The notes under the pieces: generated by a model | Databases searched by the model: none | What the model was told of the DNA's origin: nothing | The model's input: only the letters and a program-made list of their open reading frames with translations | Shown: positions 5,767-53,660 of the stretch, piece after piece | How positions within the stretch are numbered: the stretch's first letter is position 1 | How the letters are laid out: each line of letters starts with the position of its first letter | From: Octopus sinensis | Taxonomy: Eukaryota | Assembly: GCF_006345805.1 (NCBI RefSeq) | Contig: NW_021833806.1 | Coordinates: 1-54,106, forward strand | Reading direction: 5' to 3' | DNA: 54,106 bases | Program-made: the position numbers and the translations under genes

Positions 5767-6459
5767 ATGATGCGCGCGGGGTTTCTTGTGGTGTTCGAAG
5801 GCCCTGATAAAGTTGGAAAAACCACACAGTGCAAGCTCCTATACGAATCCCTAAATAAAATGGGGATTCCATCTAGATTAATGAAATTTCCAGGCAATGA
5901 TTGTTTGCTAATTCATTAGACCGGGAAACCAAGATAGGAAAATTAATAGACTCATATCTCAAATGTCAAATAGACTTGGACGATCACGCTGTACATCTTC
6001 TTTTTTCTGCAAATAGATGGGAACTTTAGTTTGTTATTTTTTTTATTTTTAGTAACGAAATGATCACTATTTTGTCTGAAGGAAAAATACTGATTCTAGA
6101 TCGTTATATTTACTCTGGAATTGCATATTCAGTGGCTAAGGTTTCATATATGAATTTAAAAATTTTTAGGGTTTGTCCCCAGAGTGGTGTAGTGCATGCG
6201 ATGTGGGACTCCCAGAACCTGACATTGTATTATACTTGGAGAAAAAAAATGTTATTTTTCCGAATAACAGTCATCATGAGAGATATGACAATCCTCTTTT
6301 TCAGGACAAAACTTCTTTTTGTTTCAAAAATCATTTTCCTGAGAATACGAAAGTTTGGAGATAGTAAATTTTTGATATTAGATTATTACCGTATGCGATG
6401 ATATTATGGAAACACATAAAATTATTCTCAATTTTGTCTTAGAAATGTCCAATATCTAA
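5767..6459 (+). CDS. DTYMK: Thymidylate kinase (dTMP kinase), 5 exons
   Basis: MMRAGFLVVFEGPDKVGKTTQ P-loop, LLFSANRWE, ILDRYIYSGIAYSVAKG and GLPEPDIVLYL. Introns 5894-5919 (GC-AG), 6029-6052, 6141-6169 and 6353-6381 keep the frame; TAA at 6457-6459. Confidence 0.95.
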
Positions 6460-6789: not shown

Positions 6790-7350
6790 GCTAAGTTAAT
6801 TAAAGGCCTCACGAGACACCCGACCAGCCTCGCAAATGGCGAAGCCGTTCCCTCAGATCACAGCAATCGACAGACGTTCCAGGAGCCAAGAAAACTCTCT
6901 TGGGTCGTGACTAGTCCTTGAAATCCGTCGACCGAGCGAGCGAAGGAAGCGGAGTGTCTTGGGACCGAAGATCCCGGAGGACTCCACGGCAATTGGAGTA
7001 AAGAGCAGCGAGTTGGAGAGGTGGCCGTACTTGAGAATCTTTCGCTCCTCGGCCTGCCTGGAAGCGTGCCCAGGATTGGCGGCGGACAGAGCGAGATTTC
7101 CCAGCGAGAACGTGTCCGAGCAGGTAGAATCCCAAATAAGGGATTTCCCCTGCTCGTAGGGGAAGGTGGACATGCCGTCAGGGCGTTTGCCATCCCCTCT
7201 ATCCAATCCAACAGGTTCAAGGATTGACGGGATGCCTGCTGAAGCGAGGGCTCTCTGTATGACTGAGTTGAGTTCACTGTGACGGGGGGCACGACCGGCA
7301 CTCCGCCGGCAAGCGAGGGGATGCAAACCGTACTCGTCAACAGTTCCCCC
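6790..7350 (-). mobile_element. 5'-truncated CRE-clade non-LTR element (REL endonuclease end)
   Basis: HPLACRRSAGRAPRHSELN..LEPVGLDRGDGKRPDG..LIWDSTCSDT..PIAVESSG..ERLSIAVI, the PD-(D/E)xK domain typical of CRE elements. Confidence 0.8.
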
Positions 7351-7575
7351 AATTTATTCATATTTTAATGATGATTAATAATGACTTTAAATCAATTACA
7401 TTAGTCCGACCCCCAAATGGGGCACCAAGTGCCCCAAAATGCGGGGTGCCCCAAAAACAGGGGTTGTTATTTTTTAAAAATTAACCCATTAATAAACATC
7501 AAAAAACATTTTTACTAAAATATTCAGTTATTTTCTTTTTATTTGTAGAGTTTTGTCTGATATTGTTCGTCAATT

Positions 7576-8890
7576 TCAGCCGAAAATCAAAAAAATCTCG
7601 GAGCATACTTGGTGCAACATTAGAAATTTTTTCTCTAAATTGTTAAGCAGATCTTTTGTTTTTGCTACGACATTTTCACTATTTTCGGTTTCTGAATATG
7701 TATCATAAACATTATTGTTCATGTCTTCGCATTCTCCATCAATTGTTTCGTTAACAACTTGATCTAAATGTTCATCTGTTAGACAGTTTTTTGTTGCATA
7801 AGAATCACGGTTCCTGTCGATTTTCTTCCAACAATTAACAATACTTTTAGCATCTATTTTCTCCCATCCTTTTGAAATTAGCATCATAACCTGACGCAAA
7901 TTTAATTTACCAATAGAATGTGTAAAATCGTTTTCGAAATCTTGAAAACATAAAAATTCCATTAAGAAAGAGGAATAATAATCTTTAAAAATCTTGATTA
8001 TTCCCATATCCAAAGGTTGTAAATAGGGCGTTGTATTTTTCGGCAAAAATAAAAATTCGATGTTCGAACATTCGGCAGTTTTATGGCATCCCGCATTGTC
8101 AAGTATTAATAATATTTTTCTGTTGTTTTTGCAAAACGATTCATTTATAAGTGTAAGCCAACTCATAAAAGTCTTTCCAGTCATCCATGCATTTTGAGAA
8201 GATGAATACAATAACCCAAAATCTTGAACATCAAAATTTTTTAGACACCGAGGTTTTTTATTTTCCAATAATCAATGGATTAAGTTTTTCCCCGATTAAA
8301 CTGCAGCATAGAAGAACAGTGAGTCTTTCTTTCCCTTGTTTATAACCAAAACACGGTTCGCCTTGTTCAACAAATGATTTTTGAGGAGTTCTTTTTAAAA
8401 AAGCGCAGTTTCATCACAATTAAATATATTCTCAGGTCCATATTTTAATACTTTCTGGTCATATTTTTCAAAAAATATTTTCACATAAGATAAATCACAT
8501 GAAGCTTTTTCACCACATATTGACTTGAATTGAAGTTCATGCCGCAATTTAAATCTATCAAGCCACCCATTGGAAGCTTTAAAAGAAGTAAATCCAATTT
8601 TTGAAGCTGTAACTAAGGCAATTTTTTCAAAATAGGGTCTGAAATCGGAATTTTATCTACGCGTAGTCTTTGAAATATTTCAAAGACTTGATCATCAAAT
8701 TTATCTTTATCGGCTTTAAATGTGTCATATCCTCAGAAATAGTATTGCCGTGTTGCAAGAAAGGTACATTTCGTTTTTTTTATTCTTGATATTGTTCCTT
8801 TACTTGTGTTGTACTTTTCATTAGTTGCCTCTCAGATAAATTTTTCTTCAAATTTCTTTAGCAATCTTCAATTTAGTTTCGTAATCCATA
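7576..8890 (-). pseudogene. pogo/Tigger transposase (CENP-B HTH plus DDE_1), frameshifted
   Basis: ASNGWLDRFK, IFNCDETA, SSQNAWMT, LILDNAGCH and FLPKNTTPYLQPLDMGIIK, in broken frames. Confidence 0.85.
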
Positions 8891-10679: not shown

Positions 10680-10983
10680 CGACGATATTAACAGGTAAGT
10701 ATTGAGGTGAGGATGTTTATATTCCACGAATTCGATAATTTCTGATGAATTACCATTTAGATTTAAAAGGCTGCAATTTCCTTTGAGGATGAGTTTTGCA
10801 ATGACAATAAACAAGGCCCAGGGACAGTCATTAAAGGTAGTTGGGTTATTTTTAGAGAGTGAGTGCTTTTCACATGGACAGCTGTATGTGGGATGCTCGA
10901 GGGTAGGCAGAAGAGAAAATTTATTCATATATGCCAAGGAAGGACGGACGACAAACATCGTTTATCAACAGGCGATAGAATAG
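10680..10983 (+). pseudogene. Helitron RepHel Pif1-like helicase C-terminal remnant
   Basis: QFPLRMSFAMTINKAQGQSLKVVGLFLESECFSHGQLYVGCSRVG..TTNIVY. Confidence 0.9.
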
Positions 10984-11336: not shown

Positions 11337-11595
11337 TTAGCGAGATGCTGCAGAGCAAAGAAAAATTGCCAAATACGCAAATCTTGGACAACGGTACCGC
11401 TTCGTACCTATCGCTGTGGAGACTTCTGGGGTAACCGGCCCTCTTACGACTTCTTTCATCAGAGAAGTCGGAGGAAAAGTTGCTAGGCGACGTGGGGAGC
11501 CTCGAGAAGTGTCATGGTTATTCCAACAAATTGGAATAGCTGTCGTTCGCGGCAATGCACACTCCATCATGCGTGCAACCGCAAGTGCCTTTTAG
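11337..11595 (+). mobile_element. CRE-clade 3' fragment
   Basis: AEQRKIAKYANL..FVPIAVETSG..WLFQQIGIAVVRGNAHSI. Confidence 0.75.
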
Positions 11596-15450: not shown

Positions 15451-18413
15451 TTGTCTTTCTCACACTTGATATCTGCTGGCCCGTTCTCAATTGGCACTCT
15501 AAACGTTAGAGGACTCAATCCCATGTATAAACAACTTCAACTCACAAGAGATTTGGAACAACGCAAGGTGTCCATCTGCTGCTTACAAGAGACGAAAATA
15601 ACTGAACATGGAAGCTCGAAGATAGGCGATTACACACTAATTACCCTCCCAACTACCTGTCGTCACTACGGCCTTGGGTTTGCAATCAACAGAAAACTGG
15701 ACGAACACATATCCGGGGTGTGGTCCGTCTCGGACAGGATTGCGGTACTCCAAATCAAATGGGGAACGAAACCGAACTCCCTCGTCACAATCATTAATGT
15801 GTACGCGCCAACTGGAGTCAGAGCCCTTGCTAATCCGGATGAACTTGATGAATTCTATTCCACTCTCACAAATTTATACAACACACTCAGATCCTCGTAT
15901 ATGTGTTTCATTGCTGGTGATTGGAACGCCAGAGCAGGGAAAGCCAGGCCGGAGAAACATGCATAGGATCCCATGGAAGAAACCGGAGAAATGTGCCTGG
16001 AACTGCCTTGATCCAATTCTGCACCTATTTAGACCTATTCTTATGCAACACGGCATTCCGTCATCCAGCCAGGCACAAAACAACATGGACTGGAACCAGA
16101 AAGGACTCAAATGGAAATTACATACCTATATTCAATCAAATAGACTACATCCTCTGCAAAGCTGCCCATAAACATCTACTTGTGGATTCACGTTCATACG
16201 GGGGACTGGAGACAATAGTGACCACAAACTAGTAATCACTAGCATCGGACTGTACAAGACATACAACAAACTGAAAAAACTTACGCATGATGAACAAGAA
16301 AGCTATAATCTTGAATTATTCCGTGATGAAAAACTCAAACAGAACTATGCAGACAAACTACAGGAAGAACTCGACAATATTGACACAACAAAACCTGCAA
16401 ATGCGATTTGGGATGCAGTGACCAGTGCAATGAAGAAGACAGCTGTAAATGTTGTTGGACTCACTCGAAAAAAACACAAATTTCACGATAACGAGATTTG
16501 CTCCCTCTCAGAAAGGCAGAAAACCTTGAGGTTAAAAATACAAAACTCCAGCAACCCGAAAAAAATAAGAGAACTCCGAAAATTACGGAACATGATATTA
16601 CTAAATATCAAGAAAACACAGAAATTGCTAGTGTACAAGAAACAGAAGAGCAATTTCAACACATAACAAAACAAAAGGACGACACGAAAATGTTCATGGC
16701 AATGAGGCTGCTAAGCAAAAAAAAGAGGCAAAATTCGATCACTGTCTGGGACACCACGGAAGCGGCTATCATTGACAACAAGAGTAAGGTAGAGGCTATA
16801 TCTGAATACTACTACAAAATGCTTAACTGGGAGGATGAATCAGGATACAAACCCTACCCATATACTGTAGGGGCACTAAGTTCCCCATTAACCACTTACG
16901 AAATATTGGAGGCAATGAAGAAACTGAAAACCGGCAGGTCTGGGGGACCGGACAATATCCCACCTGAACTAGTAAAATATGCGCCAATGAAGTTTGCTGA
17001 AATCGCTGCAAATATCCTGAACAAGGCATTTGAGCAGAACAACCCATTAGACCTCGGCAAAGGATGGTTAATTCCTCTACAGAAACCTGGAAAACAAAAA
17101 GGACCCCTATCCAGCCTAAGACCTATTATTTTGCTAACGACGCTTCGGAAAACACTGTCGTTGATCGCATTAGAGAGGATAAGAACCAAGGTGGAAAACT
17201 TTCTGTCACCGGGACAAAGTGGCTTTAGAACTGGCAGGTCCACTGCTGATGTGATCTGGACTCACAGATGGACAGCTGCCACATGCCAAAAATATAAACA
17301 TTGCACTGAAATACTCGGCATCGATATGTCCAGAGCATTCGACTCTGTTCACAGAACTAAACTTGTGGAAATACTTATGACCTTCTTAAATCATGACGAC
17401 ATCAGAATAATCCTAATGCTTCTTCAGAACACTCAATTAGCAACCAAACTTGGTAAAAATGTGTCAAACTATTTCTACACATCACGGGGCATACCACAAG
17501 GCGATTCGCTGTCCCCAGTTCTCTTTATCGTCTACCTAGAGGCAGCACTCAGAGACTTTCGGCCTCTTGTGGACAACACTAAATACAACGAAATAATATA
17601 TGCTGATGATGTCGACTTCGTATCTGATGATGCTGAAACCCTTCGATTTATTATCGAAACTTACCAGATATTTTTTCCAAATGGTTTCTAACAATCAACC
17701 ACAATAAAACTGAACATACGAAATTTATTCGATCTGAACGAACTCATGATGAGCCCTGGAGAAGACAAAAAAAAAGTCGGATCTCTCTTAGGGGACTCTG
17801 AAGACATTATGCACAGAAAAATACTATCAATTGCCACATACAATAAGTTTATGAACATCTGGCGCCTAAAGAAGCTAAATTCAAAGACAAAACTTAAAAT
17901 ATACAACACATTTGTTGTCCCAGTCCTAATGTACAATGGATCGACGTGGGGAATCAGTAAGACCGATATGAACAATTTGGACCGATTTCATCGGAACCAA
18001 CTGAGAAGAGTGATAAACATGCAATTCTCAAGAAAATAGCAAATTCCACCCTATACAAAAGATGCAATTCGAGACCGATCTCTATGGACATCCTGGAGTC
18101 CAGATGGCGACTCTTTGGACACATATTAAGACTTGACAGCCTCACTCCGCCGAATATCGCGATGGAAAACTACTTTGCCCATTCCAAAGGAGACTTCCGT
18201 GGAAGACCCAGGGTCACTCTGGCTACCACGCTAAATGAAGATCTAGCTGGAATTAATAAAAAACTGAAAAATGGCGATGATCTCGACTCACTCAGGACGA
18301 TCGCAACTGACCGGAGAGCCTGGAGACGCATGACCGGGAGAATTTCAATGGTGGCACAAGGAAAGCTTAATTAACTTATGACTTTTCCGAAAGTGCTTTA
18401 TAATAATAATAAT
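15451..18413 (+). mobile_element. Near full-length RTE-clade LINE (APE endonuclease plus RT) with a few frameshifts and a (TAA)n tail
   Basis: EN motifs GTLNVRGL, CCLQETK, INVYAPT, AGDWNA and QIDYIL; RT motifs LRPIILL, QSGFR, DMSRAFDSV, GIPQGDSLSP and YADD; 3' TAATAATAATAAT at ~18400-18413. Confidence 0.9.
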
Positions 18414-18623
18414 ATCTACTCTCCTCCATTCAACTATTTATTCAGTTAAGAAAATAATAATAAATAAATAAAAACTTTAAATAAAAATTATAATTTTTTT
18501 ATTTGTTTAATTAAAATTTTAATAATCAAATAAGATATTATCTAATTTTTTTTGATGGTTGTGCCGTGTTACTTTTCAACCTTTAATAAAACATATATTT
18601 TAAATATAATATCATCATTTTAG

Positions 18624-19921
18624 GATAAACAAGAAGTCGGTTTCGACCCAACGAAATACGGCTTACGTAGAGATTTTGCTCTCACAAAATACACCGAACT
18701 AAAGGGATGAGGCTGCAAAGTCCCCCAGTCAGTCCTGCTCAGACTACTGGAGGGACAGAAGCCGAACATCCCCATGGATCTAAATTCTTCCAGATCCTTA
18801 ATGGGTAACTACATTATATATTCAAGGAATTGACTGCAGTATTGTCCCCTTGCGGTACGGAGGTCTCAGTCTAATACAAACTACTGATTTTTTCTACCCA
18901 AATATTGACGATCCTTACAAAATGGTAATATTTTGGTCGTTTATAACTTTTGGAGAACTATACATGTGGGAGAATGCAGCTGATGTCTACGCGTTTGGAT
19001 ACGCTTCTAGGAGTAATTGTGACTGACTGTTGAAAATGATTTTGGGTGTCAGTACAGGACTTGTTGGGGCTGAGAGGAGTATTGTGGTGGATTTGATTCG
19101 TAGTGGATTTAGAGTGTCTTTTAGATTACGTAATATTATATAGGATCAAGCTAAATTGGCGGGAGTTGAAATTTCGGGTGGAACTGTTACTTTTAATCCT
19201 TGGATGGTCATTGGAGGTGTTGCAAGTTCGATATGTAAAGACTATTTAATGTTATTTTTGTTATTTATTTTAGGCCAACAAGTGCAGTAGAGGGAGACGT
19301 GTTGGTTCTTACGAAACCTCTAGGAACCCAATTGGCTATAAATATGTACTTGTGGCTCAATCGGCCTGACAAGTGGAGTAAACTCAAGAGTGTAGCCCGT
19401 CAAAGTGATGTGATTAAAGCTTATAAACGTGCAATTGACTCAATGACAAGACTTAATCGAGAAGGTTTTATTAATTGGGTAAATGTTAGCTTCAATTCTA
19501 ATGAAACGTTATAATTCACATGGGGCAACAGATGTCACGGGTTATGGTCTTTTAGGCCATGCGGAGAATTTGGCACGTTGTCAGACCAATCAAGTCTCCT
19601 TTTTGATTTACAACATTCCTGTTATTGCTAAATTACACTCGTTTAATAAATCGTGTGGGAGTCCTTTCCCGCTGTTGAGTGGTCGTTGTCCTGAAACTTC
19701 GGGTTTTTTTCGTTTTTGAAATTTTATTGTTTTTAGGTGGGCTTTTGATAATTTTACCACAACAACAAGCGGCGAGTTTTTGTAAGGATCTTCAAAGGCA
19801 GGAAGGGTACCAGGCGTGGATTATTGGAGTGGTTCAGAAGGGGAACCGTACAGCGAGGATAGAGGATAGTGTGAGAGTCATTGAAGTTCCCGCGAAAGAT
19901 AATGAAAATCAATTATGGTAG
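18624..19921 (+). CDS. SEPHS2: Selenophosphate synthetase (SelD/SPS2 type) with in-frame UGA = selenocysteine; exon 3 partly garbled
   Basis: [59 protein letters not shown] and [20 protein letters not shown]. Introns 18805-18826, 19114-19143, 19251-19273, 19465-19489 and 19703-19736, plus 18925-~18951 with no clean AG. Start uncertain (possible ATG at 18555 followed by an intron). Confidence 0.92.
18720..18756 (+). promoter_or_regulatory. Candidate Sec redefinition element (SRE) hairpin 9 nt 3' of the UGA
   Basis: GTCCC/GGGAC, CCAGT/ACTGG and AGTC/GACT pair (14 bp, two 1-nt bulges, 7-nt loop). Confidence 0.65.
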
Positions 19922-19952
19922 GAAGTATTGAGCAGTGCTTCCTGGGTGCATG

Positions 19953-20011
19953 GAGTCAGATTATGTGATTATTCTTCACAAAGTATGTGATTTATATGAT
20001 TCATCTGACTT
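19953..20011 (+). promoter_or_regulatory. Candidate SECIS element in the SPS 3' UTR
   Basis: Helix I AGTCAGAT/ATCTGACT; core GTGAT..TGAT; 11 nt from TGA to apical AAA; helix II pairs 7 of 10. Confidence 0.65.
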
Positions 20012-20439
20012 TTTATACCCTTCTACTTTTTTATTTTGATTTTTTATAAAAATAAATAGTTTAGTGGACTTTTATACCTAGTTTTGGGTCACTTATTTAT
20101 TTGTTTTCTCTGTGTTAACATATGAGTACAAAATTTGGATATTAATAATTCATACTAAATAACAATTTAAATGGTTGGAAGTTTTTCAATCATACCTTTG
20201 GGTAGTAGTTCTCATAGGTATGTGATTGTGAGTCATTATAGCTCTCACTCCCGTATTACAATACTATTTGTTTATGATTGAATAGCTCATTATTCAAAGT
20301 AATTAGACTGAAAACTGTATTCGGTAGTTTATTTTCAGATGATTGGAGTACGCAAAGTTTAATTGCCAAAACTATTTTTTTTACTCTCTAGAAAAACTAT
20401 TTGCTTCGAATAAATATATTTGATAGACTTCGCTAAAAA

Positions 20440-21130: not shown

Positions 21131-21599
21131 CTCCTATTAGAGGGAGAATGCAAGCAACATAGTTCAAATCAAAATCATCGCTGTGAATGCTCGATCTATT
21201 AAGAGACGCCACCAATATTTTGTTAAGATGATATGCAGCGCCCATTCAGACATTATTGTCTTTTACTATCATATATTGTTATGTTTATCTCCTCCATTAT
21301 TATCGGTTCTTAATGGATATAATGTTACGAACTTGTATTCAGAGTTATTAAATTGTCGATGTCTAGCTTGTCTTTGCTATTTATGTTATTAGCTTGTCTT
21401 GTCTTTGCTTAAGGTTGTGCGAATGGAGACAGTTGACCTTATTACGATTTTAGAGATTGAAATGCAGAATCCTCCAGTGACCCCACCTGTAGAAAAGGAT
21501 GTCTCTGTATATGTCATGGTCCTCACATTGAACATCTTGTTTTTAACACTTCTTTTAACTCTTGGTTGATAGGATCGAAGATCATGTCAAAAAAAACGA

Positions 21600-21692
21600 T
21601 CGGACAGACAAGCTGGCTTTTTCAGCGAATCTCGGTCGCTGTGCTCACCGGAAACTGCCATTCCATACGCAGCGCTGCGTCAAAGAGCTGAC
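21600..21692 (+). mobile_element. Short CRE-clade 3' fragment
   Basis: SWLFQRISVAVLTGNCHSIRSAASKS*. Confidence 0.6.
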
Positions 21693-23150: not shown

Positions 23151-23954
23151 CTCTACAGTTTTCAAAATAAGAATATTTAGCGTATTTTCTTGCTTTTGAC
23201 CTCTTTGGATAGGATTCCGAAACTTTCGAGTGATTCTCTTATGTTCTGGGCGTTCCAAACCAGACAATTTTTCCATTGAAAGAAAAGGTCGTCATACTGT
23301 CTGGTCTTCTGCCGTTTTTGCAAAGATCAGGTTCCAGCTTTGTGTGGAATCCGGAATTACAAAGTAACGGGGAAAGCGTCCCATTCCGTGACAAAAAGAG
23401 GAGTGGTAATCAAGTTTATCGACATTTATGTTGGGCAATACGGGTGAACCGAGAGGTAGGCAGATTCCAATCCTCACAGTGGTGACCAGCTGCTTAAAAA
23501 CCTAAGATTTCGGTCAAGCACGGCTCAGATGCAAATTACTCATTTTTAAGCATGCCAGCTAGCCCTAGTCTATGCGTTCGTTCAATTTTTCTTATGCTTT
23601 GTCCTTGATGAATGATGTGCATTACAATTGGCGAGCTGTATTAGATAAAATAAGCAGTCCCGGTTTTTTTTAATGGTAAGGATTCTAAAATTGTTTATTT
23701 ATTTAAATCTTTTTGGAATTTTGTACTAATTTTGTAGACACGTATTTTATTCTTTTTAATTCGTATATTCTTAATACAAATAAATCATATTGATAATTTA
23801 TTTCATAAAAAGCTAATAACTAAAATTACAAATATCAATAACGCAAAGTGAGTTCAAAAAGTATTTAACGAAATCAATAAAACTATTAAAAAAAAGCAAG
23901 TAATAAAACTAACTATTAAAAAAGCGAGTACTACTATCGAACACAAAGCTCAAG

Positions 23955-24925
23955 GTGCGGGTCGGCACGGCGTTTTCCCGTGAATTCACGTGCAACGTCG
24001 GTACCCCTCAGGGAGACGCCCTCTCGCCGTTGCTATTCGTGATCTATCTGGAGACGGCACTACGAGACCTTCGAAAATTCTATGCTGGCAATATCGTCGA
24101 AATTGTATATGCAGATGACGTCGACTTCGTGTCAGACGACAAATCGGCCTTACTTCGACTCCTTGAAGTGGCACCTGCTGAGCTGAACAGATGGTTCCTT
24201 AAAATGAACGTTGGAAAAACCGACATCGTTGAAATCATGAGGATGGAGAGCAGCTCAAGTGAAGCCTGGCGCAAAACGAACAAACTCGGTTCTCTACTTG
24301 GGGACGGCCATGATATTGTCAGAAGAAAGGCTCTCGCTTGGGCCACGATGAACAAGATAAAGAAAGAGTGGATCGGCAAACGACGACTCTGTACGTCACT
24401 TCGTCTGAGGATGTATGAAGCCTTTGTCAACCAATCCTGACATATAATTCGGCGACCTGGGGAATGTCTAGTACTGAACAACGTGGACTCGATTCTTTTC
24501 ACCGCAGGCAACTTAGATCCCTACTGGGATTGAACTGGCCTATAAGAATCAACCAGGAATCGCTATATAATAGATGCAGAACTGGCCCTCTGAGTGTGGA
24601 AATCGTCAATATGCGGTGGAGGTTATTTGGCCATATTCTACGAATGGACATGCTTGCCCCAGCTAAATAGCAATGGAGGGCTACTTCCTGAAAGAGGGAT
24701 CGAGCTTCCGTGGACGTCCACGTGTTACGCTGCCGGAAAAACTTGACGGAGACCTGAAATGTGTGAAGAAAAGGCTAAGGAGTGGTGAGGATCTGGACGA
24801 GCTGAGGAAACTCGCTCACGACAGAGGAGGTTGGAGGAGGCTGGTTCAAAGGATTGTTTTTAATGCTGCACGAGTAAAATTATAACTAATATGATTCTAC
24901 GTATGTTGCAAATAATAATAATAAG
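23955..24925 (+). mobile_element. 5'-truncated RTE-clade LINE with (TAA)n tail
   Basis: GTPQGDALSPLLFVIYLE, YADDVDF, RWRLFGHILRM and RGRPRVTL; AATAATAATAATAA at ~24911-24924. Confidence 0.85.
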
Positions 24926-36062: not shown

Positions 36063-37521
36063 CAGTGCTGGTAGAAAAAAACCGGTTTTGCAGTTACTAA
36101 CTTTTTTTGGCAGATAGCTATTAATTTTCTAAATGAAATAAAGAGTTTGAAGTTGATTATATGTATAATCTTTTTTAATTTTAAAAAATTTCAATAATCG
36201 GCGGAAATTTTAAAAATTTAAATTTTTGCTTGTGAATAAAAAACCGGTTTTAACAAAAAGAGTTAACAAAATCAACAGTTAATATGTTGTGTGGTATCCT
36301 CGATTAATAAATAGCTCGTATGACCTGTTAGGCATACTATCAATTAACTTCTGAATACTTTCAGACGGCAATTCGTTCCAAATTTTTGTTAATTTGACTT
36401 CCAGATCCAGTTTATTTTTTGCAGGATCTAAAGAATACTTTTGCTTCATCATTCCCCAAACATGTTCCATTGGGTTCATGTCTGGAGATTGCGGAGCCCA
36501 ATCAAAAATTGGAACTTTATTTTCTTCAAAAAACTTGGTTGTCAATGCAGATTGATGACAGAAAGCCAAATCTTGTTGGAAAGTGAACTGATTTAGTCCC
36601 ATTTTTCGCGCCGAAACGAACAAATTATTCGTTATTACATTTATATATTTAGCGGAATTGAGGGTTCCATTAGCAAAAACTAAATTGCCCACTCCTTGAT
36701 AGGAGATACAGCCCCAAACCATAACACTGCCTCCACCAAATTTTACTATCGGCGTAATATGGCTCAATTCATAACGTGAACTTTTTTTTCGATAACTGTA
36801 TTGCCTTTTTTAGTATAAAAAATCTTAAAAGATGCTTCATCAGAGAAAATAATAGTTTTCCATGCGTCATTGTTCATCCGAATAAAAATTTTTGACAATT
36901 CATATCTTTTTATTATGTTTTTCTTCGAAATCAACGGTTTACATTGACATACTCTTCCGAAGAGAAAATTGGAATTTAAATAAGTTCCAATTTTCTTTCT
37001 ACAGACACTCTTACCGGTTAAATAATTTATTTCATTCCTCAACGTGTTAGAAGATTTTTTGGATCGCACTCAACAAGATGCAATAAAATTTCAACGTCTG
37101 TTTTTTGAAGCTTTTTAGGACGTCCAGAACCAGGAATCCTATCAATAGTTCCATATTTTTTGAATTTTCGAAGAAAATCTCCAATTGTCGATTTTGGAGT
37201 ATTTAGATGATCTGCGATATCTTTTATCGTTTAATTTAACTCATAAAGAGCAAAAATCTTCCATTTAATTATTTTATTTAACATTTGCTTATAAAACTAA
37301 AAATTCAACTACTAAAATATCACTCAATAATGAAAACCGGTTTTTTATTCACACTCTAAAATTTAAATCTTCAGAATTTTAAACGATTAATGGAATTTTT
37401 TATAAATAAAAAAAATTATAAATCTAATCAACTACAAAGAGTTCAATTCAGTTAAAAAAATAAATGCTATCCGCCAAAAAAAGTTAGTAACTGCAAAACC
37501 GGTTTTTTTCTACCAGCACTG
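36063..37521 (-). mobile_element. Tc1-family (DD34E) transposon with 189-bp IR/DR-type TIRs; transposase frameshifted
   Basis: TA-CAGTGCTGGTAGAAAAAAACCGGTTTT / inverse-TA; IIFSDEASF, GGGSVMVWGC, FQQDLAFCH and QSPDMNPME with 34 residues between D and E. Confidence 0.92.
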
Positions 37522-38132: not shown

Positions 38133-39189
38133 CAGTGCGACCTCGAATTGGGGAAAACCAAGTAGCGGGGAAACCCTCTTTTTTGGGGAAAACCTTGCTT
38201 TTGGGGAAATATTTTTGCCATCCCTATAAAATACGATGATTTTTAATGAAATAAACCTCCTACCGGGGAAAAATTTTATATTATCATAAACGATTCATTA
38301 ATATATTTGTATAATTTTGATTTATTATTATTTATTGTAACCTGTTTTTCCAAATTTGTAATCAATAATTTTTAAAATTTATTTAACCTGGTAACTTACT
38401 TATTTAGCTAATTAACCTGGTAAAAAATTGAAATTATCAATTTTTTAAGTTATTATAAATTTTAGAAAGCCAATGCCTAGAAAACTAAATCAAAGTGAAA
38501 AGATCAGAATTTGCAAGGATATACAGTCGGGGTCATAAGGACAAAATGATTTGTGAAGGATTTAACATCTCTAAAGGAATGCTATACCGACTAAAAAAGA
38601 AAAGGGAAGGAATCTTAGCTCAGGTTTCTCAACATCCGAAGGGACAATTGGATACGAATTGAATGCCCAAGTTTACGAGATTTTTCGTAATCTCAGGTCG
38701 AAAGGTTTCCCAATTAATGGGCCAACCTTAAAGCTTATTGCACGTAAAATTGCGTATAGAAATTCAAATCATGATTTCACTGCTTCTAATGGATGGCTTT
38801 ACAGATTTAAGAAACAATTCGAAATAAAATTCAGAATATTACATGGCGAATCACGATGCAGCGAACAATTTATGGAACATTTGGATGATCAACAAGTTAT
38901 AAACAATGCGGAATGCGCATTCACAATGCTGCTAAATGTTATTAAGCAAGAGACTCCGGAAAATGTACTTGATCTATTCAGATTCAAAGCAAATATTATG
39001 AGTTCGATGCGAAAAAAACAAAACACACGATTAAAATTAACTGATTTTTTTATTAAAAATTAGTTATTCGTCTCGGTTATATTATTAAGAGAGATATCGA
39101 ACAGGCGAGACCTAAATTTAATGAAAAACCTTTTTTTGGGGGAAAACCTCAAAATTGGGGAAAAATTTCCCCAATTCGAGGTCGCACTG
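38133..39189 (+). mobile_element. Internally deleted Tigger element
   Basis: TIRs CAGTGCGACCTCGAATTGGGGAAA with TA TSD; ATG at 38473; HTH and CENP-B domain (FTASNGWLYRFKK..LHGES); DDE core missing; ends KLTDFF. Confidence 0.9.
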
Positions 39190-39902: not shown

Positions 39903-42249
39903 TTTTCACGTGCCAATTTAATTTTATAAAAGTAATATTCTTTTTAAAAATAATTAATAAATATGTATTTATGACTGTTAATAAACAAGAAAGAAATGAT
40001 TATCGTAATCTTAAGCTGCTGATGATCGAGAAGACGTTGCCCCTCAGGATCGCAATGGATATTCTTTGGAACAACCATTGCTTCTCCCGAGGTTAATAAA
40101 CTATTTTCTATATTTTTTTGAAAATACGTTTGCGGTCCGAGCAGATGCCGGATCCAGACAAAAACCGGTGACACTTATAAAACAAAATTACAGACTAAAT
40201 CTAAAATCAAATCTCAGATTAAAATTGACTAGTTGCGACCTAGACATTAGACAAATCTCCAAAAAATTAAGGAATCACATTTCTTATTAATGAGACTCAT
40301 AAATTTTATTTTTAAATGAATTCTTAATTATTATTGAATTTTTGATTTAGTCAGGTGGTAAAAGGTGTCTTTTCGATTTGTCGAAATTTCTGAGAATATC
40401 AAAAATTGGCTTTTCTCCAAAAATATTTGCCGACTTTTAGTCCAGAATAAAATTATTTTAACGACAATATTACTGTTCAAATGCTTTAAATTACTCAACT
40501 TAAATGTCCAATTAAAAAAATCAAGTTTTCCACCTCATTTTCTTGTGCCATTTTCAGAATTTTAAATTATTATTTTGCTTTTTCTTCTAAATCTCTCGGT
40601 CATCTTTTAAATACGATTAAATGTATTTTACATTAAAGACCAAATAAAGTTTTAATTAATTTGAATGACCCTAGGATAGCGTGTGAATTTCCGCGGACAA
40701 TTGCACACGAAATCCTCTGGAAGAAAGTATTGGACTTTTCTTTTAAATTAATTTCTTTATTCTTCTTTTAACTTTTTTGTCATTTCTTTGTATTTGTATT
40801 TTCTGTTTCGTTTTCATCAATGTTAATATTCCTTTTGTGGTTTAATGAACATGAGAATTAAGCCAACTGCACCTGCTTACCAGGCTACGGTAGAATATTT
40901 TCTTTCAAATAGACAAAATGGATTTTTGGATGGGACGTCTCCGGACTAACGTGAAAGTTAATTATGCTTTTGAATCGATGTATCTGAAGTAAGAACCATT
41001 GGCTCCAACTTAAACCCTAAGGTATTTTCACTGTTTAAAATTTAATGTAAAGATATTATCCTCATTTTGTCATCCAGGAAAATAACTCTCAGAGTACCTA
41101 AATCCAGGACATTATGCCGAAAAACATTCTTTCAACGTGATGAAATGACTTCTAGCCTTCCAATCCAAATAAAACTGGGTGTGTACAAGTAAAACACCAA
41201 AATGAAAATCTCTCTTTAGTTATTAAAAACGCCTCCGAACTTGAAAATTTCGATTTAAGGTACTACAGTTTTGGGAGGTCCAAAACTCTTTTGGTAAAAA
41301 TCGTCATGTAAATTGCCTCAGCAAAATCTCTTCAAAGAACTTGTCTGTACTACTCTCAGAGTGTCAATTCAATAGATAAAGCTGTCTGTTCATTTTCTGG
41401 TAACTCTCAATCAATATTATACAAATACATAAGGTCTCCGAATTTTACAATGCCTTAAATATCAAATATCTCACTATATTCAGTCGCACTGAAACAGCAG
41501 TTTAAAACAGAGTAGACTAAATTTTTTGGACTAAACTGGAACACACTAATATGCTTTTTTTCTGCGTTTGTCGACAGAATTATCAATGCCAAATATTTTC
41601 ATTAGTTGGCCAACGCCTAAGTGACAAATGTCATTTCACATGCTGGACGTTGGCATTTCTAATAGTCGTAAAACTAGAATGATTTTTCAATTTGAACTCT
41701 TCATTCAAAATTGCCAAAATGTGCACAAAACTTGATATCGAAAACATCTTCAAAACTTACAAAAACGATCAAAAATTGTTTAAACTTCTAAAAAATCGGA
41801 TACAATCACACCGTTAGTAAATTGATCATAGTTTAAGAAATATTATCGAAGGCCGATATTTACAATCCAAATAAAATTAAAAAATTTATTTTGCTACTGA
41901 AACAAAAAACCTTAATAAAAATCAAATAGCATCCAACATAAGCGAAACTGAAAAGACCTTTTTGAGAATATTGAAAAACTAAAAGGATGTCGTCCATGTT
42001 ACAGAAAGTAGCTGATTTAAAGAAAAAATTCAAAATATCAAAAAAATGCAAATTGGAGTCTTAACATATGTTAGACTTCGAGCACTGTCGACACTATATG
42101 AAAAATGAGAAAAGACGGAATAAAAAAATTGAGAAAAGACAAAAAAAGACATAGCATACATCGATTCCTTTTCCGTGTCTAAAGTTATCTTGACTTCTTT
42201 GGCTTTTACGAAAAATCTGTCGATGTGGGTCACCTTCTTGCCGTGACAG

Positions 42250-44785
42250 GTGATAGTTTTATACTACGAAAAGACCTACAACTACTCCCCTGCCGGATCG
42301 GATCGATTCCGCGACGTCGGTGGCAGCAGAGCAGGCGCGAAGCCGTTGCTCCCAAGGACCTCTTTGCTTATCAAACTCACCCTTCTACTTTCCAGAGACA
42401 TTGAACCAAATCCTGGCCCCAGCAAAAAGAACCTATTACGTATCTTGCTCAGAAGACTGCTGAACTTTATTCCTTCCTGGAGAAGCACGACGTGGACATT
42501 GCTTTGGTGCAAGAAACAAAGCTCTCGGCAAAAATCGCTTGCCAGATTTCCCTGGTTATTCATACATCCGTCGGGACAGACCGGGCTCTGTAAATGGAGG
42601 TGGCCTACTAACTCTTATCAAAAAATCCATCCCGTTCACTAACTGTACCTCCCAAGCTTACTCGCTAATTGGCAACGATCAAGTGATTGAAATGACAGCT
42701 ATAACTGTCTCTACAGGGTCATCAACTAGGAGACTCTCAATGTATACATACCTCCTCACTCGTTATGTCCTCATGGATGGACCCCTTCTATTCAAAACCT
42801 CCAGTCCCTTAACAATGTCGTTATTTGTGGTGATATGAACGCAAAGAGCCCGTTATAGCTAAAAAAATCAATCTCTCAACTCAAGAGGATCTTTACTATT
42901 CGACCAATTTGATGGTTTAGTTATCCTCAACAATCCCTCATCTCACACCAGAAAACCGTCAAGGAAAGGCGACGCAAATTTCTTCTCCTGACATCCCGCT
43001 GTGTACTCCAATTCTGGCCCCAGTTACTTCTTGGAAAGTCATTTACGACTTAAATTATGATCACAACCCGATATTATTATTGAGAATGCCCCAAAATCCA
43101 AATCGACATCAACGGCGGTCGTTTTATACGAATTACAAAAGAGCTTCCTGGAACGAATACTGTCTCGCTCTAGAAAAATCATTGAATGATTTCGACATTA
43201 TCAACTTTCGTTCGACTGATGCAGCAGTCAATTATCTCAATGCACTTATCATCTCCACCTCCAAAAAATTCATTCCTCAAGGAATTATACAAAATTTCTC
43301 CCAAAGTTACAGCCACGAAGTAAACGCCCTTATAAAGACCCGTAACAATTCGAAACGGAAAAATGGACAATCTGCTGTGTCCTTTATAAAACTGAGGAAT
43401 CTAAATTCGCAATCTGTGCTGGACGGCTTCAATGAGAAGAGACCCCCAAAACGAACAGTACTAGTTTCAATCGATATCTCAAAGTCGTTTGACAGCGTCC
43501 CTCTGTGTGGACTCATCAACAAAATTTTAAAGACAGACCTAAACTCAAACCTCAAATCTTGGCTTGCAAACTTCTTATCGGGTCGAATGGGATACGTCTC
43601 CCTTATTGGGTACCGCAGGATTCTGTGTTGTCCCCTTCCCTGTTCAACTTATATTTACATGACTTTCCGGCGAATGACCCAAACAACTTGACTTTATCTT
43701 ACGCAGATGACATTATCATTGCTTCTAAACACGCAGATTACATATCAGCCTCTCTCAACATCCAGCAACAATTATACTCCGTTGAGATTTGGTTCATTTA
43801 AAAACAGACTCGAGGCTTCGCCCTCAAAATTATCGGTCACCTATTTCTTCCGACAGAAGACAATCAAACCTTCACCCGAAGTTATCTCTCTTTGGTTCTG
43901 ACCTCCCACAATGCAAAACCCCTACTATCCTCGGACTTACTTTTGATCCAACTGTATGTCCTTCAACAAGCATGTCTCTAACATTTCTGACAAGGCAAAC
44001 AGACGCACAAACATACTAAAAGCAATAAGTGGTCACATTACAGGCGCCCAGAAGCCACTCCTCAGACGAGTTTACAAACAATACATACGGCCCGTATTAA
44101 GTTATGCGAGTCCAAGCCGGGCGCTCTGTCTATCCATAAACTCGACAATGGCACTTCAATCAGTACAAAACAAAAAAAACCATGCGCACAATATCTTGGT
44201 GTCTGAAATCAACCCCAATTGATAACCTCCACTGAGAAACAAACCTTTTGCCAATTGAAGATAATCTAAATATGAGAGGAGCCCAATTTTTATTTGCATC
44301 TCGAATGTTCTGCTCTAAATGTGCTAAACGGAAATTCTCGTTCAGTGAAGAACACGCCGGCGAATCTATATTCCCGGATCCTTGCAAAAATCGATGAGGA
44401 AAATTCACAATTCGATATCCACATCAGCTATTCTTAAGCTGACGCCTAACTCTGTACTCAATAAACCTCCTCCTGACGTTCACTGTTCTGAATTGCTTCT
44501 CGACCCTTCGGACTTGGCTCGTTTCCGTTCTGGTCATCACTCCTCATTAAACCACTATGCACACAAAATGGACATCTCGATCTCCCCCTTTTACCCCATT
44601 TTCCATGCTGATGAGCATACAACCGCCAATCTATTCCGCTGTCATGGTCTTCTATCGTTCCGTAAAAAATTTGCCATTCACGCCCCGAAGGTCCTATGGG
44701 AGCAATCTGGGAGGGCGCTTTTGTTTCTGCAAGATGCTGGTCTCATAACTTAAAGTAGGATCGGGGTTATGCAACAACAACGAAA
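42250..44785 (+). mobile_element. Decayed APE-type LINE (I/Jockey-like) with 2A-like motif
   Basis: LLLSRDIEPNPGP at 42382-42420; EN motifs DIALVQETKL, RRDR..GGGLLTLIK and ICGDMNA; RT motifs DISKSFDSV, VPQDSVLSPSLFNLY and YADD; CAACAACAAC tail at ~44772. Confidence 0.8.
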
Positions 44786-45375: not shown

Positions 45376-48018
<2,643 letters not shown>

Positions 48019-52443: not shown

Positions 52444-52634
52444 ATGTCGCTTCTCGGCCTTTTGGCTAAGATCAAAGTGTAGTATCTGTTCTTTCCAGCT
52501 TTATATCTGGGACGCCCTTACACGGGGCAAGATATAATGCTTATTTTTGTACCTTGGTATGTGTTGCGAAGCTTGCTTCCTCCATACCACGCGTCCTCCC
52601 GGTATTGCAGTACTTCCGGGTTGGGCGCATTCCC
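52444..52634 (+). ncRNA. RNU2: U2 spliceosomal snRNA
   Basis: TCGCTTCTCGGCCTTTTGGCTAAGATCAAAGTGTAGTATCTGTTC 5' end; Sm site TATTTTTG; 3' stem CCGGTATTGCAGTACTTCCGG. Confidence 0.97.
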
Positions 52635-52669
52635 TTTTGGGAGTTTTCAACTTTATAAAAATTAATTAG

Positions 52670-53020
52670 CTAATCACGGGAAATGCCTCATCTGGCACGC
52701 GACATGCTCCGACACATTCTCCCCGCATAACCTGATTTCATCAGCTGCTGAGCCCGGCTCAGCGGCAAGACATGCGGAGGTCACAAAAACAAGAAAATAC
52801 TCGTACCTGGCCAGAAACCACATTTTTGCGCCAGTAGCCGTGGAGACATCCGGGGTCATCGGCCCAGAATCGCTTTCTTTCCTTCGTCGGCTGGGGTCGA
52901 AGATTGCCAGACGAAACAAGGATCCCAACGAGACTCGTCATCTTTTCCAAAGAGTCTCGTTGGCGATCGTCCGAGGGAACTGCCAGGCCATCTTATGCGC
53001 CGGCAGTTCAAAATAACTGC
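52670..53020 (+). mobile_element. CRE-clade 3' fragment
   Basis: WHATCSDTFS..PVAVETSGVIG..HLFQRVSLAIVRGNCQAI. Confidence 0.8.
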
Positions 53021-53084: not shown

Positions 53085-53480
53085 CTGCTTGAACCCACTG
53101 GGATCGATCGGGGGGACGGAAAAAGCCCTGATGGGATCACTGTGTTTCTCTTCAACAGGGAGAAGCCTCTTACCTGGGATGCCACGTGTGTGGACTCTTT
53201 CTCGCCTCAGAACCTGCTGATGTCCGCATCCGCCCCTGGATCTACTGCGGAATGCAAAAAGATTGGAAGTACTCCTCACTTATAAAAAAAAGTTCCAATT
53301 TCTCCCATTCACAGTTGAGACTTCCGGTTCCTTGGGTGGTAAGGCAATCAGCTTCGTTCAGGAGATCGGGTCCCGAATGTCTGCTATCACAGACGACGCC
53401 CGCGAATCAGGATGGTTTTTCGAGCGGATATCCCTTGCGATAGTACGTTCTAATTCTTTCTCGATCCCGTCCATGAAGCT
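53085..53480 (+). mobile_element. CRE-clade 3' fragment
   Basis: LEPTGIDRGDGKSPDGIT..TWDATCVDS..FTVETSG..FFERISLAIVRSNSFSI. Confidence 0.8.
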
Positions 53481-53660
53481 TCAAAACTTGACCGAATTCT
53501 TTTTTCGTAATTTTCATTGTGGTTTAACTTCAATTCGCTCGCCAAGAGATCGTATTTATGTAATTTCTCGACTTCCACATTATGTTGAGAAATAAGTCCA
53601 ACTTCAATGAGCGTAATGATGTTCCGAACTTTGTCGTAATCGCTGTTCAACATTCTTCCA
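53480..53660 (-). mobile_element. R4/Dong-like REL fragment
   Basis: IITLIEVGLISQHNVEVEKLHKYDLLASEL. Confidence 0.6.

Follow-up and report, generated by a model that had tools for sequence, protein, structure and literature searches.

The 54,106-nt stretch analyzed here (the window; contig NW_021833806.1 of assembly GCF_006345805.1, filed under Octopus sinensis) encodes a selenophosphate synthetase (SPS/SelD) on its plus strand, in a gene that spans roughly 18555–20070 and has an in-frame UGA at the catalytic site. We read the locus, with a probability of about 0.45, as a working gene of the SPS2 type (SEPHS2/SelD), the ancestral metazoan form with selenocysteine (Sec) in the N-terminal catalytic loop, in which two defects found in exon 3 are not the expressed state and represent an assembly or haplotype artifact or a tolerated oddity. 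That the locus belongs to the Sec-type SPS2 kind, whether alive or just dead, we consider very probable. In the working gene, a ribosome would arrive at the UGA at 18708, where termination would be slowed by a Sec redefinition element (SRE), a hairpin that starts 12 nt downstream. A kink-turn hairpin in the 3′ untranslated region (3′UTR) would serve as a compact Sec insertion sequence (SECIS) and recruit SBP2, eEFSec, and Sec-tRNA; Sec, presumably in preference to any other residue, would be put in at the UGA, and translation would go on to the TAG at 19919. The resulting enzyme would produce selenophosphate for Sec-tRNA synthesis. The exon 3 defects would be a local assembly or haplotype artifact; alternatively, a 48-nt in-frame intron would be used and a second UGA would also be read as Sec.

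The conceptual protein scores 180 bits with the NCBIfam selD equivalog TIGR00476, for which the cut-off is 125, and contains the Pfam domains AIRS (PF00586, E 1e-5) and AIRS_C (PF02769, E 2e-14). It is 54–60% identical to animal SPS, with 97–98% of the length covered. Three-frame translation and tblastn with two homologues show that the conserved SPS blocks change frame every 100–200 nt, and the exons were joined by means of a purpose-built protein-to-genome alignment with three reference proteins; the first junction of the coding core (18805–18826) was placed from the sequence and the homologue alignment. The gene thus modeled extends from a putative start ATG at 18555 to a TAG at 19919–19921 and is interrupted by seven GT-AG introns of 22–66 nt (Table 1). 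The first intron occupies either 18558–18623 (66 nt) or 18561–18623 (63 nt), which gives the N-terminus M(V)DKQEVGFDP... and excises an in-frame TAG at 18621–18623. The original prediction had placed the gene at 18624–20011, a span that holds the coding core and falls short of the full extent given above. It had also followed the frame through spliced exons to the TAG at 19919–19921; this end does coincide with the homologous C-terminus, but the path to it is broken near 18970 and meets a second TGA at 19024–19026.

Outside exon 3, the protein retains 143 of the 191 positions that are invariant in other animals. Metal and ATP are bound in E. coli SelD by residues D51, D68, N87, D91, and D227. 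The Asp equivalents are present here in the segments GIDCS, TTDFF, AADVY, and ATDVTG, as is the loop Lys, and the Asn of the helix motif is one position off (N-x-x-D, not N-x-x-x-D), in the segment that contains the frame break. The N-terminal 93 residues align with human SEPHS1 (PDB 3fd5, 9hjt; E 2e-23) and with E. coli SelD (PDB 3u0o; E 4.5e-05), from which the gene differs in having UGA where those proteins have Thr or Cys and in a one-residue displacement of the CAN-motif Asn. An AlphaFold2 model built on a 10-sequence SPS alignment reached a pLDDT (predicted local distance difference test score) of 37 and was unusable.

The TGA at 18708–18710 had been predicted to lie in frame within ELKG-TGA-GCKVPQ and to mark the catalytic Sec position of SPS/SelD, and both translation and homologue alignments bear this out. 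The codon sits opposite Thr29 of human SEPHS1 and falls in a column that is R or C in arthropod and rotifer SPS, and R, C, or U across more than 40 SPS. Homologues that are listed as N-terminally truncated proteins have TGA at the Sec codon in all transcripts and genomic loci fetched, and the Sec codon is likewise TGA in 33 of the SPS loci found in metagenome and metatranscriptome contigs; therefore, the position of the UGA is not due to chance. UGA is otherwise an ordinary stop codon in this genome, since the neighboring MCM6 gene ends with TGA where its homologues end and is free of in-frame TGA throughout its 784 codons. A single SPS2 with Sec was present in the last common ancestor of animals, and outside some insects and nematodes, SPS2 and selenoproteins have been retained in all animals. 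SPS2 tracks the use of Sec precisely and is the best single genomic marker for it in eukaryotes (PMC4561486). Given that ancestry and its near-universal retention, an SPS gene of this kind is what one would expect to find.

A stem-loop is predicted for the 91 nt that begin at 18700; its energy is −36.1 kcal/mol (z −3.69), and 0 of 200 shuffled sequences are equally stable. Its core helix begins 12 nt downstream of the UGA, and an equivalent helix is predicted at the same codons in arthropod transcripts, in a snail gene, and in metatranscriptome SPS. In a gapless alignment of 31 distinct UGA-containing SPS sequences, the pairing holds in 85% of cells, versus 37–68% when the partners are slid against each other. 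Seven of the 14 pairs show compensatory changes on both sides, and the covariation score exceeds those of all 500 shuffles. The hairpin is the known SRE of UGA-containing eukaryotic SPS genes, having been reported in all of them; where a SECIS is absent, SRE and hymenopteran readthrough (HRE) elements promote Sec-independent readthrough (PMC4561486).

A probable second RNA element is found in the 3′UTR, where a hairpin has several features of a SECIS. Its helix I is a perfect 10 bp (19952–61 with 20003–12), followed by a 3-nt/1-nt internal loop; the quartet is formed by GUGA (19965–68) opposite UGAU (19997–20000), in register around the helices, and an AAA (19980–82) occurs 11 nt after the GUGA. 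The fold gives z values of −3.8 and −3.0, and an energy of −14.9 kcal/mol with the quartet held open. We searched with a descriptor of our own design, which calls for (A/G)UGA, 9–12 nt, AA, and GA, plus helix counts, and the hairpin is the best match on both strands of the window (108 kb). With thresholds that were fixed after this match had been seen, a match of equal grade arises in 5 of 5000 shuffles of the UTR (0.1%) and nowhere else in the window, within which the hairpin sequence is unique. As a control, the descriptor was applied to SPS of the millipede Chamberlinius hualienensis (GCA_054772095.1), where it picks out a textbook SECIS at L009:6188–6266, 575 nt past the stop codon, with AUGA, a helix II that is 12/12 paired, AAAA, and GA. 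The GUGA quartet is shared with three of six other SPS SECIS elements (two in L084 and one in L085). These observations make the hairpin a probable candidate for an unusually compact SECIS.

In the course of the same searches, additional elements were encountered. The metagenome SPS mRNA L084 carries two tandem SECIS in its 3′UTR (1760–1835 and 1884–1959), both with GUGA in place of AUGA, and a third of the GUGA type is found in the related contig L085 (2380–2451); judged from these sequences, the GUGA quartet appears to be recurrent among SPS SECIS elements. Many arthropod-like SPS transcripts (L001, L003, L005, L017, L020, and some 20 further loci) contain both the UGA and the SRE hairpin, and neither descriptor nor model detects a SECIS in their 3′UTRs (up to 1.7 kb). 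SECIS-less genes of the SPS1-UGA type may be commoner outside Hymenoptera than described, or the descriptor may be insensitive. A second SECIS-like pattern downstream of the gene (Table 1) was rejected as probably a chance occurrence: its fold is no better than shuffles (z −0.2), and it scores 7.0 bits with the covariance model R1 described below. A C/D-box small nucleolar RNA (snoRNA) on the minus strand at 19952–20012 was also considered, as SNORD28 and snoTBR7 match with 17.5 and 14.2 bits (cut-offs 45–60). This reading was dropped, the putative D box being located inside the perfect stem, and the weak matches probably reflect no more than shared K-turn-like GA motifs.

A number of observations weigh against a working gene. 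They bear at the same time on the principal alternative, which we take seriously while leaning against it: the same Sec-type SPS2 gene may be a dead copy, either a very recent pseudogene or a null allele, inactivated by the loss of 1 nt near 18970 and by nonsense at 19024 (TGA). Relics would then be all that is left in the first UGA, the SRE, and the SECIS-like hairpin, and the lineage would be losing or would have lost Sec if this is the sole copy. The first of these observations concern exon 3. Canonical splicing results in a coding sequence of 1136 nt (2 mod 3) whose frame is lost at about 18970: downstream of the 31-nt intron it runs through NYTCGRMQL... into a stop at 19031. NYTCG corresponds to KIACA of the homologues, with its conserved Cys, and NAADVYAFG, which corresponds to their NVLSDLYAMG, follows in the next frame. 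A frameshift at 18971–72 is forced by all three reference proteins in the protein-to-genome alignment; with a 1-nt placeholder near 18970, the frame is open to TAG 19919. The second in-frame UGA, at 19024–26 and also in exon 3, occupies a loop that is 3–4 residues longer than in homologues.

None of the splicing schemes tried cures the two defects. We searched exhaustively, with introns of 15–90 nt, through combinations of up to three GT-AG introns and, once GC donors were admitted too, of up to two introns, for a stop-free product that retains the conserved strand LLKMILGVS, and no GT/GC-AG scheme removes both. The highest-scoring canonical in-frame option is a 48-nt intron at 18925–18972, with which six conserved residues equivalent to GKIACA are lost and the second UGA stays. 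A 14-nt intron and exon skipping were rejected as rescues since the catalytic residues would go. In addition, exon 3 is the least conserved exon of the gene: nine other animals share 27 invariant positions in it, of which 14 are kept here, compared to 75–83% in the other exons, and it is here that the catalytic Asn is out of register. One feature of the damage speaks for the Sec reading, in that the premature stop is a TGA, the only stop codon that a SECIS can recode.

The 3′UTR hairpin adds to the case for a dead copy, being unlike the type seen in other SPS mRNAs. Its helix II is not continuous, consisting of 3 bp, a 3 × 3 loop, and 4–5 bp, so that 7–8 of 11–12 positions are paired, while 9–12 of 12 are paired in the control SPS SECIS elements. 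Helix II is also short and AU-rich, and the apical loop of 5–7 nt is without a mini-stem. In the six other SPS SECIS elements (L009, L083, two in L084, L085, and L087), each arm of helix II is 12 nt long, and AAA and a mini-stem are present. With a covariance model derived from two of these elements (R1), nothing in the window scores above noise, the hairpin reaching only 5.4 bits, though the model is too narrow to decide the matter: it recovers the second SECIS in L084 and one in L085, and it misses the millipede and L083 elements. MAFFT did not bring a wider SECIS set into register. Rfam, too, reports no SECIS in the 3′UTR. This negative carries no weight, however, because the millipede control likewise goes unreported by the Rfam 15 cmscan, even when just 111 nt are searched at E ≤ 10.

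The neighboring genes bear on whether the exon 3 defects arose in the assembly. MCM6 (48018–45376, minus strand) has an intact open reading frame (ORF) of 784 codons, 67–71% identical to mollusc and vertebrate MCM6, and is interrupted by 11 GT-AG introns of 22–30 nt. An apparent frameshift at 45622, at first sight an assembly error, is a 22-nt GT-AG intron. MCM6 is thus a clean example of ultra-short animal introns, in agreement with the tiny-intron animal that had been predicted, and its flawless frame speaks for an accurate assembly in this region. The dTMP kinase gene (5767–6364, plus strand) is intact as well, with tiny introns and no in-frame TGA; one of its junctions is either a 17-nt GT-AG intron (5903–5919) or a 26-nt GC-AG intron (5894–5919). 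The GC-AG alternative presumably gives exactly the length of human DTYMK. Taken together, about 3 kb of neighboring coding sequence is free of indel errors, and because these genes are flawless, assembly error is not the default explanation for exon 3. The divergence of the SPS protein points in the same direction. It is 53–60% identical to other animal SPS, which are 64–95% identical among themselves, whereas MCM6 is not unusually divergent; this fits relaxed constraint and may alternatively reflect lineage-specific evolution. Further points for a dead copy are a decayed long interspersed nuclear element (LINE) that ends about 140 nt upstream of the ATG, the lack of a second SPS copy in the 54-kb window, and the precedent of selenoprotein loss in insects and some nematodes (PMC4561486). 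We looked for independent copies of the locus by way of its exact product, protein searches, a metagenome DNA pattern, and a metagenome protein scan, and found nothing closer than 63%; in the protein collections searched, none is closer than 60% for SPS or 71% for MCM6.

The extent of the damage argues against prolonged decay. There are just two lesions, some 52–55 nt apart, in 1.13 kb, and their proximity suggests one local cause. The approximately 250 codons 3′ of the lesions are open and in phase across four introns, all of which are intact, and end at the homologous C-terminus; six other splice junctions are likewise undamaged. Any inactivation must therefore date from very recent times, corresponding to about 1% divergence. 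The SRE forms a highly stable fold, its pairing kept through lineage-specific compensatory changes, and the 10-bp helix I of the 3′UTR hairpin is perfect. A long period of relaxed constraint should have left more lesions than this. Therefore, the lesions are local artifacts unless they are very young, with divergence of about 1% or with a null allele that is still segregating. Pseudogenes in insects and nematodes that have lost selenoproteins offer a comparison: if the copy is dead, it resembles them in its recognizable UGA and RNA elements and its broken frame, and it differs in how little is damaged, all of it within a single exon.

Another possibility, which we regard as improbable, is that the gene resembles SPS1-UGA, with non-Sec readthrough aided by the hairpin, a 3′UTR hairpin that is no SECIS, and a non-catalytic "SPS1" function. 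The insect SPS1-UGA genes of Hymenoptera and Paraneoptera are similar to the gene in having UGA at the same site and a strong adjoining stem-loop, and SRE and HRE elements do promote Sec-independent readthrough without a SECIS (PMC4561486). Arthropod transcripts of this kind are among the best database matches of the gene, most of the UGA-SPS transcripts fetched lack a SECIS by descriptor or model, and the SECIS candidate is atypical. Sequence identity is of no help in this instance. The protein is equally distant (49–59% identity) from every SPS type, which is compatible with readthrough and at the same time means that it has no specific affinity to SPS1-UGA or to any other group; assignment to SPS1 or SPS2 by identity was therefore abandoned. 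The RNA structures, on the other hand, differ, though not decisively. In SPS1-UGA genes there is no SECIS, and the UGA sits at an apex of a three-stem HRE, in contrast to the gene described here, in which a single extended stem has the UGA at its 5′ base and the 3′UTR hairpin fits the SECIS core pattern far better than chance. Moreover, SPS1-UGA has been described only in insects that also duplicated SPS (PMC4561486), and readthrough at the first UGA would leave the frame break uncured.

Within the reading as a working Sec gene, a less likely variant still is a remodeled enzyme with two Sec residues, in which the 48-nt intron is spliced and the UGAs at 18708 and 19024 are both read as Sec. No sequence error is needed for this variant. 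The 48-nt intron is the top-scoring canonical one and is in frame, and the extra stop is TGA rather than TAA or TAG. A eukaryotic SECIS serves any in-frame UGA of its mRNA, and the residue at the second UGA would be placed in the loop that is longer than in homologues. However, the helix that bears the catalytic Asn/Asp would lose six conserved residues from its beginning, the other 17 short introns in the window measure 22–34 nt and not 48 nt, no significant structure that could act as a recoding hairpin follows the second UGA (z −0.18), and we know of no SPS with two Sec residues. A change of the nuclear code that makes UGA a sense codon would account for two in-frame TGAs in one gene, but it is contradicted by MCM6, which stops at TGA, and by the lack of in-frame TGA there and in dTMP kinase, and can be set aside as extremely improbable.

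Returning to the favored reading of a working Sec-type SPS2, the gene can be compared with metazoan SPS2/SEPHS2 (PMC4561486). The two are alike in family, domain order, the UGA codon in a G-U-G-C-K loop, and the C-terminus, as well as in having an SRE directly after the UGA and a candidate SECIS in the 3′UTR. One copy is seen in the window, as for the unduplicated ancestral state. The differences are the frame break and second UGA in exon 3, the unusual divergence of the sequence, and the SECIS candidate, which is short, of the GUGA kind, and interrupted in helix II, where the six SPS elements compared are of type II. All seven introns are also tiny (22–66 nt). The distinctive features of the gene are its tiny introns, its compact GUGA-type SECIS candidate, and its damaged exon 3.

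The original prediction went beyond the gene and held that an apparently reduced, possibly parasitic lineage still runs Sec decoding. The locus is no proof of this, with a frame break and a second TGA in exon 3 as assembled, and ongoing loss of Sec is a live alternative because exon 3 is damaged. A full Sec toolkit is reasonable as a prior expectation for the lineage. The locus alone cannot carry such a claim because exon 3 is damaged and the machinery genes are not in the window; no tRNA gene and none of the genes for eEFSec, SBP2, PSTK, and SecS are found in these 54 kb, which is a further point against a working system. That the lineage is reduced and possibly parasitic would fit the literature. 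The 18 introns modeled in SPS and MCM6 measure 22–34 nt, except for the first SPS intron (63–66 nt), and according to a 2026 survey, introns of <30 nt are restricted to myxobolid myxozoans and Dicyema japonicum (PMC13644364). The window has a GC content of about 35% and is rich in transposable elements, which the figures reported for D. japonicum (36.7% GC, 49% repeats, and many LINE ORF2 copies) fit; the genome of that species, a merged PacBio RS II/Illumina assembly, also shows 1.24% heterozygosity (PMC6736024). Our literature search brought up no work on selenoproteins for either dicyemids or myxozoans.

The state of SPS2 in a lineage with the shortest introns known in animals would tell whether the Sec system is preserved in full by genomes reduced in this way. 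An intact gene would add one more animal with the ancestral Sec-SPS2, together with an unusually compact SECIS candidate. If the exon 3 defects are real, they would indicate that Sec has recently been lost in an additional group of animals. Should the lesions be real and this be the sole SPS copy, a tiny-intron, probably parasitic lineage would have just lost, or be losing, Sec, which we regard as unlikely; it would amount to a further independent selenoprotein extinction, beyond those of insects and nematodes, with the relics still readable. An intact gene would still be useful for annotation, because gene callers will split SPS at the UGA and at 22-nt introns.

Table 1. Coordinates of the SPS gene, its RNA elements, and the exon 3 defects in the window
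Feature	Position	Strand	Basis or description
Candidate start ATG	18555–18557	+	Predicted; in frame with exon 1, GT donor directly after
Exon 1, main part	18624–18804	+	N-terminal Gly-rich loop including the UGA
Stem-loop around and 3′ of the UGA, SRE-type	18704–18772	+	Fold; conserved core helix 18720–18756
In-frame TGA, catalytic Sec/Cys position	18708–18710	+	ELKG-UGA-GCKVPQ
Intron, 22 nt, GT-AG	18805–18826	+	Sequence and alignment
Exon 2	18827–18924	+	tblastn and protein-to-genome alignment
Intron, 31 nt, GT-AG	18925–18955	+	Protein-to-genome alignment
Exon 3, damaged	18956–19113	+	Carries the helix with the catalytic Asn/Asp and a core β-strand
Frame break	18966–18972	+	1 nt missing; NYTCG (exon 2 frame), then NAADVYAFG (downstream frame)
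Second in-frame TGA	19024–19026	+	Faces a nearly invariant Asn, inside the conserved core
Intron, 30 nt, GT-AG	19114–19143	+	Protein-to-genome alignment
Exon 4	19144–19250	+	Protein-to-genome alignment
Intron, 23 nt, GT-AG	19251–19273	+	Protein-to-genome alignment
Exon 5	19274–19464	+	Protein-to-genome alignment
Intron, 25 nt, GT-AG	19465–19489	+	Protein-to-genome alignment
Exon 6	19490–19702	+	Protein-to-genome alignment
Intron, 34 nt, GT-AG	19703–19736	+	Protein-to-genome alignment
Exon 7, coding part with stop TAG 19919–19921	19737–19921	+	C-terminus ...KDNENQLW* versus ...KEKEGELW* of homologues
SECIS-like hairpin	19952–20012	+	Fold and descriptor match
AATAAA polyadenylation signal	20051–20056	+	130 nt 3′ of the stop codon; 3′UTR about 130 nt
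Second, weaker SECIS-like pattern	20339–20400	+	AUGA, 11 nt, AAAG ... GA; then another AATAAA at about 20410

The mobile elements of the window include a decayed non-LTR (long terminal repeat) retrotransposon at 15451–18415, on the same (plus) strand as SPS, in which an APE endonuclease and RVT_1 are recognizable across several frame changes. Its (ATA)n-like tail lies about 140 nt upstream of the SPS start codon. Other LINE fragments occur at 679–2112 (−), 23913–24882 (+), and 42247–44750 (+), and remains of DNA transposons at 7579–8652 (−), 36282–37069 (−), 38575–39060 (+), and 10711–10980 (+); the types represented there are pogo/Tc5 (DDE_1 and HTH_Tnp_Tc5), Tc1-mariner (DDE_3), and the C-terminus of a Helitron/PIF1-like helicase. 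An ORF family is present in five copies, at 6856–7353 (−), 11341–11592 (+), 21461–21688 (+), 52666–53013 (+), and 53221–53592 (+), which share the motif ...VE(T/S)SG..GP....F.R..G..I.....DPRE..WL.QR.S.A..RGN.... Pfam matches neither of the two copies that were searched, and the family is probably part of an uncharacterized mobile element. Finally, a full-length U2 small nuclear RNA gene is located at 52446–52635 (+), with a score of 159 bits for Rfam RF00004 (gathering score 46).

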